Part shown: piece after piece, positions 1,470 to 5,393 of the stretch
Numbering within the stretch: position 1 is the first letter of the stretch
Layout of the letters: every line of letters begins with the position of its first letter
Source: Chlorokybus atmophyticus
Lineage: Eukaryota > Plantae > Mesostigma and Chlorokybus algae
DNA length: 5,393 nucleotides
Direction of reading: 5' to 3'
Assembly: GCA_009103225.1 (NCBI GenBank)
Contig: RHPI01000772.1
Location: 144,875 to 150,267, forward strand
Notes under the pieces: generated by a model
The model's database searches: none
What the model was told of the DNA's origin: nothing
Seen by the model: only the letters and a program-made list of their open reading frames with translations
Made by a program: the position numbers and the translations under genes

Positions 1470-3536
1470 TCAAACGGAACGCAGTGTCATAATAGCCTCA
1501 CTCAGCATTTTTCCTAGACTTAAAATAGCTGAGCACTGCTTATCCCCCTCTGCCTTAAGTGCTGCTAGCTCTATCTGCTTGGCAGCTGCCTCCCTTTCGG
1601 CGCGCTCCGCTGCCATACGTTCCTGCTGCTCACACTGGCGGTTGATCGCGTCACTAATGGAAGAGACCTTGGCCTTGCGCTTCTTACCCGTGGTGCCAGC
1701 AGTCTCATCTAGAATAGCACAACGTAAGCATGCTATTGCCAAGTGTGAGGCAGTCTTGCTTGACAACATGAACATACCTTGGCAAGTCTTTGATGGCTCC
1801 TCCTCACCTCCCCCGGCGGTGAAAGAGGTGGGTGGCTCTGCAGCTGCGGTGCTGCCCAACGCGTCCTCCATCAACTCGTAGACACGGATGTTGTTGCCCA
1901 GCAAGTTGTTGGGCACTTCCCACTCCTTCTTGTGATCTACCTCAAGGCTGAAGTAGTCGGGTGCGCCTGACCGCCTAGCAAAGCGACGGATCTCATAGTA
2001 TTGCGATCTCATGTTGCTCCACCTGTAGCCCATGCACATGTTAGCAAGGCGCACTACCCACTCACATACACGAACCCTGGCTGCATACATACGTTCAAAT
2101 GCACACAACAACCAGCAAGTGGCTGACCTATCATCGCACTGAGCGGGTGTGCGCTCGAACACCCCATTGGCTGCCTCGGCAAGCTTAGATGCAGCTGCTG
2201 CAATCTCCTTCCACTTCAAGGTCTTGTTCTTGCTTGCTTGGTAAACGCCGGTGGCCCACTTCTCGTGGGACTCCTTGTGTGCAGCAATCAACCAAATGCT
2301 TTCCGCTGCACTCCACGTTCCTGCACGCTTTTTGCCTGCACAGTACACGCCGGGCAGTCATGCAAGCACCTACTCTCATTCTACACACCTGCACGCGCGC
2401 AGCCTCTAGCCATGCACATGTACAAACTTCAACACTGACTGTGCACGTGCACGCAGGTGCTGTGAGTGTGCACACACATGCACGCTAGCAGATTCTGACT
2501 GTGAACACACACGCACAATTATTGTATCACCATGCACACACATGCAAGCACCTATCAATCTACACACCTGCACGCGCACAGCCTCTAGCCATGCACATGT
2601 ACAAACTTCAACACTGACTGTGCACGTGCATGCAGGTGCTGTGAGTGTGCACACACATGCATGCTAGCAGATTCTGACTGTGCACACACATGCACAGTTA
2701 TTGTATCACCATGCACGCACATGCACGAATTGCTTGACTCTACACACACATACATCACAGCACACAAACACATTCGCACTGCGCACACGTGCACATTCTA
2801 GCACATGCATGCAGCACGCAAGCTCATCCAGACTGTGCACACACGTGTACCTGCTGCTGCAGGCGTGGCCTTCTTCTTCTTCGAAGGGGCACTTCGCGCA
2901 ACATGCTCAGACGTTGGGCAATGCACCGGCGCAGTTTCGGAGTGCGCGGGGGGCTCTTGAGCCGGAATGGGCTCAGTCGGCACGGTGCTGGGCGGCGAGT
3001 CGGGGCGTGCGTCTGGCCAAGACATTGCGGGTGCTGGGATGGGCATCTGCAGATCGGAATCACGCCACTGAGTGATGCATGAATTGAATGCACGCACGCA
3101 CGCATGCAAGCTCACTCGCACACACACACACGCACTCACATCTGCAATTACACTCTCACACACACGCACACACTCACAAGTACAATCACACTCTCACACT
3201 CACGCACGCACGCACTATACTGCACTGCACATACACGCACGCACTCACATACGCAATCACACTCTTACACACACGCACAAACACACACACACACATACGC
3301 ATGAACACACACGCACGCACGCATGCACGCACGTGCAATCACACCTGCACCAGACGAGGTCCTGTGGCTGGGTTGGGAGGGATGTGCTGCAGTAGCTCAT
3401 GCGCTCGCTGCGCCCAATAGCCATCAAGGGTTACATCCGGTGACGTGGACGCAGCATAGTGCAGTCTACCTGGTGCAGCAGTGGGTTGACTAGCTTGCAT
3501 TGCATGCCACAGATGCTGCATGTGCTGAGCGTCCAT
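1470..3536 (-). CDS. Myb/SANT-like (trihelix-type) DNA-binding protein, Harbinger ORF1; exons 3536-3345, 3046-2851, 2335-2128, 2022-1778, 1708-1470; about 359 aa
   Basis: Spliced model gives 1080 nt in one frame with GT-AG introns. Trihelix pattern WSAAESIWLI...KWKEIA...RTPAQCDDR|WSNMRSQY is restored by removing 2127-2023. Has basic NLS-like runs (KKKK, KKR, KKRK), a Pro/Ala-rich N-terminus and an E/A/R-rich coiled-coil-like C-terminus. Exons 1-2 are less certain than exons 3-5 (alternative in-frame acceptor before 3067). Confidence 0.8.
1709..1777 (-). other. Myb gene intron 4 (69 nt, in frame, stop-free)
   Basis: CAAG|GTATGT donor, TTCTAG|AT acceptor and a GCTTAC branch-like motif; phases match. 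Could be retained because it has no stop. Confidence 0.6.
2023..2127 (-). other. Myb gene intron 3 (105 nt, in frame, stop-free)
   Basis: AG|GTCAGC donor, GCTAAC branch point and CTACAG|G acceptor. Interrupts the conserved QC..RW.NM helix. Confidence 0.85.
2336..2850 (-). other. Myb gene intron 2 (515 nt)
   Basis: CAG|GTACAC donor and TGTGCAG|GC acceptor; phase 1 at both ends gives ...PAAA-G-KKRAGTW. Confidence 0.7.
2359..2760. repeat. Tandem duplication with a unit of about 179-182 bp (units 2359-2540 and 2541-2719, plus a degenerate partial third) inside Myb intron 2
   Basis: AGCCTCTAGCCATGCACATGTACAAACTTCAACACTGACTGTGCACGTGCA occurs at 2401 and 2580 (offset 179). Confidence 0.9.
3047..3344 (-). 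repeat. Myb intron 1 (298 nt), filled with CA/CACG low-complexity alternating purine-pyrimidine sequence
   Basis: GTGCAG|GTGTGA donor and TCTGCAG|ATG acceptor, both phase 0. The degenerate (CA)n/(CACG)n tract explains the HTHT-rich spurious ORFs. Confidence 0.75.
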
Positions 3537-3921
3537 AGCAAGCAACACAACAAACCACCTCGCAATGCCACCGCCTCCGCCTGCCCTGCGAACTCCGCCG
3601 TCGCAGTCTTACAAAAACCCCAGCGCCGGCATGTTTGAAATACACGACAAAAGGCGGAGTATCAGCTCAGGCTTTGTCGTCCACTCAGACGCGACCGCAA
3701 CTGCCGCGGCCCCCCTTAACATTTCCTAAAGCCGCTCGGGAGGTGGTTTAGGAAAAGTTGATAATGCACTGCAATGCATTGCAGACAAATAGCCACGCTG
3801 GCATCGAGGTTAAGCAGCTCGATACTAACCGGCGGCCTAATCGACTAGTGTAACTGGTGCCTCCATTAGGTTAGAACGAAAAGCGCCGCCACGTTTGATA
3901 ACTGCGAGGCTCGAACCTTAG

Positions 3922-3935
3922 GTGTAAAGACCCTC
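3922..3935 (-). repeat. Putative TIR of copy A (GAGGGTCTTTACAC read inward)
   Basis: Directly abuts TAA. G-start with TTT at positions 8-10 resembles PIF/Harbinger TIR layout (compare maize PIF GGGCCCGTTTGTTT). TIR length cannot be fixed without the other end. Confidence 0.75.
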
Positions 3936-3941
3936 TAAGAG
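3933..3941 (+). other. Junction 9-mer CTC-TAA-GAG (TAA at 3936-3938 is TSD-like)
   Basis: Reverse complement CTCTTAGAG fits the PIF target consensus CWCTTAGWG. Repeated directly at 4031-4039. Confidence 0.8.
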
Positions 3942-4030
3942 CGCTTTTGGTTCTAACCTAATGGAGGCACCAGTTACACTAGTCGATTAGGTCGCCGGTT
4001 AGTATCGAGCTGCTTAACCTCGATGCCAGC
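3942..4030 (+). repeat. 89-nt filler copied from subterminal sequence 4087-4175 (direct) / 3797-3885 (inverted)
   Basis: Identical to 4087-4175 (offset 145) except 3992 T vs 4137 C. G3941 also matches G4086. Confidence 0.95.
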
Positions 4031-4039
4031 CTCTAAGAG
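4031..4039 (+). other. Second junction 9-mer CTC-TAA-GAG (TAA at 4034-4036)
   Basis: Direct repeat of 3933-3941; TAA immediately precedes the copy B terminus. Confidence 0.8.
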
Positions 4040-4050
4040 GGTCTTTACAC
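4037..4050 (+). repeat. Putative TIR of copy B (GAGGGTCTTTACAC)
   Basis: Exact reverse complement of 3922-3935, preceded by TAA. Confidence 0.75.
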
Positions 4051-4435
4051 CTAAGGTTCGAGCCTCGCAGTTATCAGACGTGGCGGCGCTTTTGGTTCTA
4101 ACCTAATGGAGGCACCAGTTACACTAGTCGATTAGGCCGCCGGTTAGTATCGAGCTGCTTAACCTCGATGCCAGCGTGGCTATTTGTCTGCAATGCATTG
4201 CAGTGCATTATCAACTTTTCCTAAACCACCTCCCGAGCGGCTTTAGGAAATGTTAAGGGGGGCCGCGGCAGTTGCGGTCGCGTCTGAGTGGACGACAAAG
4301 CCTGAGCTGATACTCCGCCTTTTGTCGTGTATTTCAAACATGCCGGCGCTGGGGTTTTTGTAAGACTGCGACGGCGGAGTTCGCAGGGCAGGCGGAGGCG
4401 GTGGCATTGCGAGGTGGTTTGTTGTGTTGCTTGCT

Positions 4436-5121
4436 ATGGACGCTCAGCACATGCAGCATCTGTGGCATGCAATGCAAGCTAGTCAACCCACTGCTGCACC
4501 AGGTAGACTGCACTATGCTGCGTCCACGTCACCGGATGTAACCCTTGATGGCTATTAGGCGCAGCGAGCGCATGAGCTACTGCAGCACATCCCTCCCAAC
4601 CCAGCCACAGGACCTCGTCTGGTGCAGGTGTGATTGCACGTGCGTGCATGCGTGCGTGCGTGTGTGTTCATGCGTATGTGTGTGTGTGTGTTTGTGCGTG
4701 TGTGTAAGAGTGTGATTGCGTATGTGAGTGCGTGCGTGTATGTGCAGTGCAGTATAGTGCGTGCGTGCGTGAGTGTGAGAGTGTGATTGTACTTGTGAGT
4801 GTGTGCGTGTGTGTGAGAGTGTAATTGCAGATGTGAGTGCGTGTGTGTGTGTGCGAGTGAGCTTGCATGCGTGCGTGCGTGCATTCAATTCATGCATCAC
4901 TCAGTGGCGTGATTCCGATCTGCAGATGCCCATCCCAGCACCCGCAATGTCTTGGCCAGACGCACGCCCCGACTCGCCGCCCAGCACCGTGCCGACTGAG
5001 CCCATTCCGGCTCAAGAGCCCCCCGCGCACTCCGAAACTGCGCCGGTGCATTGCCCAACGTCTGAGCATGTTGCGCGAAGTGCCCCTTCGAAGAAGAAGA
5101 AGGCCACGCCTGCAGCAGCAG
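4436..5121 (+). pseudogene. Mirror copy of Myb exons 1-2 (4436-4627, 4926-5121) with premature TAG at codon 41
   Basis: TAT TAG GCG at 4553-4561 versus TAT TGG GCG in copy A (TGG at 3416-3414). Depends on the exon 1 model being right. Confidence 0.7.
4628..4925 (+). repeat. Mirror of Myb intron 1, GT/GTGC low-complexity tract
   Basis: Exact reverse complement of 3047-3344. Confidence 0.85.
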
Positions 5122-5393
5122 GTACACGTGTGTGCACAGTCTGGATGAGCTTGCGTGCTGCATGCATGTGCTAGAATGTGCACGTGTGCGCAGTGCGAAT
5201 GTGTTTGTGTGCTGTGATGTATGTGTGTGTAGAGTCAAGCAATTCGTGCATGTGCGTGCATGGTGATACAATAACTGTGCGTGTGTGTGCACAGTCAGAA
5301 TCTGCTAGCGTGCATGTGTGTGCACACTCACAGCACCTGCGTGCACGTGCACAGTCAGTGTTGAAGTTTGTACATGTGCATGGCTAGAGGCTG

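Follow-up and report, generated by a model that had tools for sequence, protein, structure and literature searches.

Two head-to-head copies of a PIF/Harbinger transposon in the alga Chlorokybus atmophyticus meet at a TAA-flanked junction with a 95-nt centre

[quoted passage not shown] In bacteria, elements of the IS30 type take sites beside their own inverted repeats as targets, which gives head-to-head dimers. Dimers of transposable elements, some of them head to head, form when two copies insert at one target, and the TSD is kept in their junction (PMC5932611); those described by McGurk and Barbash (2018) comprise the P element, hobo, R1 and an inverted Rover pair (PMC5932611). For Tourist-type MITEs a dimer, adjacent and nested insertions and families with frequent self-insertion are known (Jiang and Wessler, 2001, as far as summarised in PMC5172404). 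The target preference of maize PIF/mPIF and of rice mPing extends over 9 bp, made up of the 3-bp TWA TSD and 3 bp to either side (PMC2836001). Already described are MITE multimers and head-to-head dimers, as well as adjacent and double insertions. What would be new is a transposon tip that completes an extended target, so that an element with a 3-bp TSD regenerates its own site. Since this TSD has just 3 nt it does not keep an extended target by itself, and the idea put forward in the preliminary description of the locus analysed here was that the tip supplies the rest.

The locus lies on a stretch of 5,393 nt of C. atmophyticus DNA (the window), which contains one nearly full-length PIF/Harbinger element (copy A) and the first 1.36 kb of an inverted second copy (copy B). 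The coding element of this streptophyte alga is longer than 3.9 kb. Copy A carries a transposase gene and a Myb/SANT-like gene (ORF1) with the following exons.

25 to 726, + strand: transposase exon 1, an open frame with the motif GAIDGSHI and a donor GT at 727
823 to 1377, + strand: transposase exon 2 with the DDE_Tnp_4 core, open translation, stop at 1375-1377
1470 to 2335, − strand: last exon of the Myb/SANT gene, open frame 1470-2348, acceptor placed by sequence
2851 to 3046, − strand: putative middle exon of the Myb/SANT gene, open translation, splice sites placed by sequence, phase fitting the last exon
3345 to 3536, − strand: first exon of the Myb/SANT gene, 64 open codons, ATG at 3536-3534

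The transposase is a DDE transposase of the DDE_Tnp_4/IS5-like type, as is found in the PIF/Harbinger superfamily: exon 2 matches the Pfam families PF13359 (DDE_Tnp_4, E=9.7e-29) and PF04827 (Plant_tran, E=4.5e-13), and the motifs GAIDGSH, GDAAYP and VERAFG are present. Homologues of exon 1 show 30-43% identity, and joining the end of this exon (...YSIILQ) to the start of exon 2 (AVVDY...) yields the motif SIxLQAVVD, which is conserved among homologues. The last Myb/SANT exon matches PF13837 (Myb_DNA-bind_4) with E=7.5e-5 and 23.5 bits, which is under the 27-bit cut-off; the position of this gene and its orientation opposite to the transposase fit PIF/Harbinger. Exons were searched and translated singly. 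Every exon of the two genes is open in copy A. To judge by its sequence, copy A thus looks intact and is a candidate for an active Harbinger element in a streptophyte alga, which would be of practical value. The second intron of its Myb gene contains a 174-nt tandem duplication (2373-2546 and 2552-2725; 95% identity, 179-nt period), and CA/GT and GCAC repeats abound in both introns of this gene. Scans of the window for tRNAs and Rfam families gave nothing real.

Copies A and B are arranged head to head, and their Myb-side ends each touch a TAA. The junction region and copy B are composed as follows.

3797 to 3886, − strand: segment X of copy A, a subterminal stretch of 90 nt with most of a cluster of TAACCT/AGGTTA motifs
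3887 to 3935, − strand: terminal 49 nt of copy A, with the tip GAGGGTCTTTACACC read inward from 3935
3936 to 3938, + strand: TAA adjoining the terminus of copy A, a TSD-type triplet
3939 to 4033, + strand: the 95-nt centre, made up of GA, a 90-nt copy of segment X (3941-4030) and CTC
4034 to 4036, + strand: second TAA, adjoining the terminus of copy B, on the same strand as the first
4037 to 5393, + strand: copy B (inverted) with terminus, segment X (4086-4175) and Myb exons 1 and 2, running past the window end
4436 to 4627: Myb exon 1 of copy B, with a stop codon at 4556-4558
4926 to 5121: Myb exon 2 of copy B

The 9-mer CTCTAAGAG is present at 3933-3941 and 4031-4039 and nowhere else in the window, both times on the + strand. 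Matches to the degenerate motif CWCTWAGWG number two in the window with 0.19 expected, and two or more were reached in 5 of 200 shuffles. Each of the two 9-mers marks the contact of TAA with a PIF/Harbinger terminus (...CCCTC at 3935; GAGGG... from 4037), and the 15-nt tip is found exactly twice, running leftwards from 3935 and rightwards from 4037 (0.06 expected). The exact direct repeat extends to 10 nt, CCTCTAAGAG (3932-3941 and 4030-4039), owing to the single-base overlap at each junction of the centre. Both 9-mers have A as their central + strand base (3937 and 4035), whereas mirror symmetry would demand a T at one of the sites; the TAAs thus repeat each other directly and are not mirror images. 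The preliminary description had assigned the element to PIF/Harbinger, placed a 9-mer at each junction, read both TAAs on the same strand and taken copies of the family to adjoin one another at this locus with TAA between them; the DDE_Tnp_4 transposase with its Myb/SANT-like gene and the positions given here bear out all of this. Both termini that can be seen adjoin a TAA, but neither copy has its two flanks in view, since the window includes just the Myb-side end of A and that of B. Beyond the window are the transposase-side ends and the outer ends of A and B, and with them the TSDs of either copy and the host flank as it was originally.

The inverted arms, 2579-3941 and 4031-5393, comprise 1363 nt up to the point where the window end cuts them off, and they are 99% alike (99.5%). 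They differ at seven positions, which are six ordinary substitutions and the centre of the 9-mer. Codon 41 of Myb exon 1 is TAG in copy B (4556-4558) and TGG in copy A (3414-3416), so that copy B is disabled in its Myb/SANT gene. Copies A and B are two real copies and not one sequence folded back, as seen from the six substitutions in 1363 nt and from the nonsense codon private to B; the same differences argue against a fold-back read or a mirror made by the assembly. Copy B shows decay that dates from after the separation of A and B. Three of the six differences between A and B fall in the region of the tandem duplication in the second Myb intron.

The centre is templated. Its 90-nt copy of segment X is 98-99% identical to the internal segment, which lies 50-139 nt inward from the tip in both A and B, and it has the orientation of B. 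It differs at one position from the segment X of B and at two positions from that of A; at the sole difference between A and B within the segment it carries the base of B, and one change, at 3992, is private to the central copy. The junctions of the centre share 1 nt each (G at 3941, C at 4030), and the whole is enclosed by the TAA/TAA direct repeat. Together with the segment X of copy A, the centre folds into a 90-bp hairpin (−120 kcal/mol, z −23.7). Where a MITE-type derivative has an inverted terminal repeat of at least about 10 nt that matches its parent, the centre has GAG/CTC, that is 3 nt, and its ends match the parental terminal inverted repeat (TIR) at 8/15 and 6/15 positions; its flanks, TAA at 3936-3938 and again at 4034-4036, form a direct repeat of the kind a MITE-type TSD would give. 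The junction consists of TAA, 95 nt and TAA, in place of the single TSD-length copy of the target that joins a simple dimer.

A cluster of TAACCT/AGGTTA-type motifs at 4050-4166 (mirrored at 3806-3922) lies in the TIR and the subterminal region and resembles the GT-box GGTTAA. Within the terminal 180 nt of copy B, a stretch that takes in its segment X, AACCT occurs three times (0.1 expected) and CCTAA likewise three times (0.05 expected). Three of the four TAACCT/AGGTTA motifs are within the segment that was copied into the centre. These motifs may be binding sites of the Myb/SANT protein.

As just one type of end can be seen, the position of the element boundary does not follow from the window by itself. 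A 5-sequence alignment gave 80 metagenome loci with distant relatives of the transposase (31-50% identity). An independent inverted-repeat search yielded paired TIRs in two of these loci, L009 and L039, which start with GGGCGTCTTCACAAA and GGGTGTCTTCATAAA. Aligned from the first base, the alga tip agrees with these TIRs at 10/15 and 9/13 positions; the chance of 10/15 or more in this fixed register is about 8e-4 by a binomial estimate. For the soil family the boundary is fixed by 12 termini, which come from ten soil contigs and differ in their flanks. This alignment from the first base, with a boundary set by 12 termini, supports a start of the alga TIR at the G of GAG, adjoining TAA. The terminus thus stands where the preliminary description had put it, and the start at GGTC that it had named as the opposing case does not apply.

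The relatives with this TIR form an AT-rich soil Harbinger family (L009, L014, L016, L023, L024, L025, L035, L038, L039 and L066). Their TIR, GGG[CTG]GTCTTCA[CT]A, is homologous to the alga tip. AAT/ATT stands in their flank in place of TAA/TTA, and in the two complete copies the flanks agree at 2/3 positions. The flank of this family is composed as follows.

Position −5: A, at 10/12 termini
Position −4: C or T, at 12/12 termini
Position −3: A, at 12/12 termini
Position −2: A or T, at 11/12 termini
Position −1: T, at 11/12 termini

The extended flank A-Y-AWT does not mirror the GGG tip, with 0-1/3 matches at each of the 12 termini. Among the 80 loci, pairs of TIRs bounded by TAA/TTA were mostly false or of mirror type, and a search for abutted termini gave just local hairpins of 23-25 nt in L013 and L080. 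These are near-perfect hairpins of the form ...CCACCTC-NN-GAGGTGG... (L080:145-196 and L013:1616-1663), which lie in two unrelated Harbinger-bearing contigs, some 800 nt away from the match to the transposase. Perfect TIRs of 31 nt are present in L080 as well (57-87 and 2385-2415); their inner part starts with GAGTGTGTTCG. Three further loci (L017, L027 and L031) are one coral locus present three times and are uninformative. Searches for other copies of the alga family came up blank: a word-based protein search with transposase exon 1 had a best match of 43% identity, exact look-up of eight ORF references of the window (seven distinct sequences) gave no other copy, and neither did scans with 22-mers and 20-mers of the TIR through metagenome, genome and viral contigs.

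Long palindromes without a spacer are prone to break at their centre. The origin of the locus that we prefer, tentatively and with some reserve, is an insertion of adjacent copies with a later, templated repair scar. A second copy would have entered at the TAA that had been duplicated by the first insertion, a double insertion at one target. The result would be A-TAA-B, the simplest precursor, a long palindrome without a spacer in which the cuts for the end of A and for the end of B would coincide. The shared TAA would have been broken later, either by the element's own transposase with a 3-nt stagger inside the TSD, as for mPing, or by breakage at the palindrome centre. Fill-in of the 3-nt overhangs would duplicate the TAA, short copying off the neighbouring tips would give GAG and CTC, and the 90-nt filler would come from a jump between templates, over about 47 nt, into the subterminal segment. 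Cleavage of mPing is modelled as staggered by 3 nt inside the TSD, and both TSDs are occasionally kept after repair (PMC4561436). Excision of PIF/Harbinger elements is normally precise (109/110 events in yeast; PMC2836001). Three short templated steps are required for this repair, and several other routes would yield an identical sequence; every route that we constructed starts from copies abutting across TAA. The evidence is a single locus, the sequence of which would fit a repair scar and a 95-bp derivative transposed into the junction alike; it would favour neither insertion of B nor a local inverted duplication, and taken alone it cannot separate the repair scar from a miniature element, a third copy or a fold-back. 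Two other sources were rejected. An ordinary excision footprint does not account for GAG and CTC, because cleavage of the mPing type lies in the TSD and repair is normally precise; a simple tandem duplication does not account for the spacing, which is 98 nt between the 9-mers and 145 nt between the copies of segment X.

The 9-mer of the junction fits the PIF consensus quoted in the preliminary description, a string that was not found in the literature searched. An unlikely alternative to the repair scar builds on the target idea of that description: the family would prefer CTC-TWA-GAG, its tip would complete the motif, B would have been inserted at the junction of A, and the centre would be a third, miniature member of the family that entered at the A-TAA-B junction and duplicated the TAA. 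A TSD would be expected to be a direct repeat, as TAA/TAA is; the centre has GAG at its start and CTC at its end, and it holds three of the four candidate sites of the Myb protein; moreover, exact abutment is unlikely under random insertion. The 9-bp preference of plant PIF and mPing (TSD plus 3 bp per side) points in the same direction, as do the tips of plant PIFs, published as GGG, GKG or GGC, the first two of which are near GWG (PMC6327408, table 2). However, partial likeness of the tip to GWG is common among plant PIFs, so that the match in the alga is weak evidence, and ZmPIFa has the tip GGG and not GWG (PMC6327408, table 2). The centre itself has a TIR of 3 nt and end matches to the true TIR of 8/15 and 6/15, which speaks against a miniature member. 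In addition, the GAG and CTC that adjoin the two TAAs on their inner side are derived from the element and not from host DNA, and give no information on any host preference.

Any two ends of this family that meet across TWA spell the 9-mer, and the locus is therefore silent on host-site preference. The 9-mers are a consequence of the abutment, by-products of tips that stand beside TAA, and the locus does not show target mimicry or the recreation of its own site by the element. In the soil family the flank is no mirror of the tip (0-1/3 at each of 12 termini), so mimicry is not a shared trait of elements with such TIRs; the alga may still differ. That the transposase prefers CTC-TWA-GAG and the tip completes this motif, so that every insertion would create two new sites and the family would accumulate in head-to-head and tandem stacks, the former turning into sources of hairpins that silence it, seems quite unlikely to us. 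In a weaker form that would hold for the whole superfamily, one protein surface may read both the tip and the target flank. This is suggested by the PIF tips (G-G/K-G) set against the maize half-site GWG and by the half-sites of another Harbinger element in the alga tip. Both half-sites of AAACACC-W-GGTCTTT, the 15-bp zebrafish Harbinger3_DR target given in PMC3016246 and PMC3432063, are present in swapped order in the tip GAG-GGTCTTT-ACACC (4037-4051, 3921-3935). This likeness may be due to chance (about 1e-3, post hoc) or to a shared reading of tip and flank.

Rather improbable is a route through a third full copy C, in which an array A-TAA-C-TAA-B lost C by excision and the gap was misrepaired from a sister copy; with both TSDs, 3 nt of either tip and 90 nt of subterminal sequence left behind, the centre would be an extreme internal-deletion derivative. 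It would explain that both TAAs are retained and that the centre begins and ends with nucleotides of the tip and has B's orientation. Retention of both TSDs after mPing excision is known (PMC4561436), and non-autonomous PIF elements are usually internal-deletion derivatives (PMC2213677). Nevertheless, this route needs three stacked copies and two deletions that break exactly 3 nt from each end, and it has the normal precision of PIF/Harbinger excision (109/110 events in yeast) against it. We regard as distinctly unlikely, too, that a fold-back with template switch, or a fusion of sisters, at the cut Myb-side end produced a local inverted duplication in place of a second insertion. Complex inversion junctions and inverted tandems of transposable elements are known (PMC5932611), and a fold-back would accord with arms that are 99.5% alike and with a symmetry axis exactly at terminus and TAA. 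The 9-mer is self-complementary at 8/9 positions and could have primed the fold-back, and segment X with its central copy forms the very stable hairpin of −120 kcal/mol. However, the TAA/TAA repeat and the asymmetric centre would still need an earlier A-TAA-centre-TAA and thus extra steps, and the substitutions of B fit any old duplication equally. An assembly artefact, in which reads from dispersed copies were joined into a false palindrome, is highly improbable: the palindrome does reach the window end and repeats are hard to assemble, but chimeric reads usually yield palindromes without a spacer, whereas here the arms show six differences and a stop codon private to B, and the centre is ordered and asymmetric with its private substitution at 3992.

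If the tip does complete the target, a cut-and-paste element with a 3-bp TSD could reuse its own junctions. This would explain stacks of transposons and tandem arrays, and it would provide a simple sequence rule for nesting in the superfamily. With arms of at least 1.36 kb, the head-to-head pair is a ready source of hairpin RNA upon read-through transcription, so that self-stacking could be self-limiting. In this respect the pair recalls the Mu killer locus of maize.

As it stands, the locus is most likely one more adjacent transposon insertion with a repair scar. IS30 and the alga element have abutted ends in common; IS30 belongs to another transposase family, has a bacterial host, and its joined ends are a reactive intermediate. 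Tourist MITEs are members of the same superfamily but are short, non-coding and from grasses, in contrast to the coding alga element of more than 3.9 kb, and the summary of Tourist multimers given in PMC5172404 is silent on tips that complete a target motif. The pair resembles the dimers of PMC5932611, in which two copies are joined via a spacer of TSD length and the target duplicated by the first insertion is reused; one of these head-to-head dimers has a palindromic motif in its junction. Unlike these dimers, the alga pair has a TSD of 3 nt, and its junction holds a 95-nt templated piece between the two TAAs.
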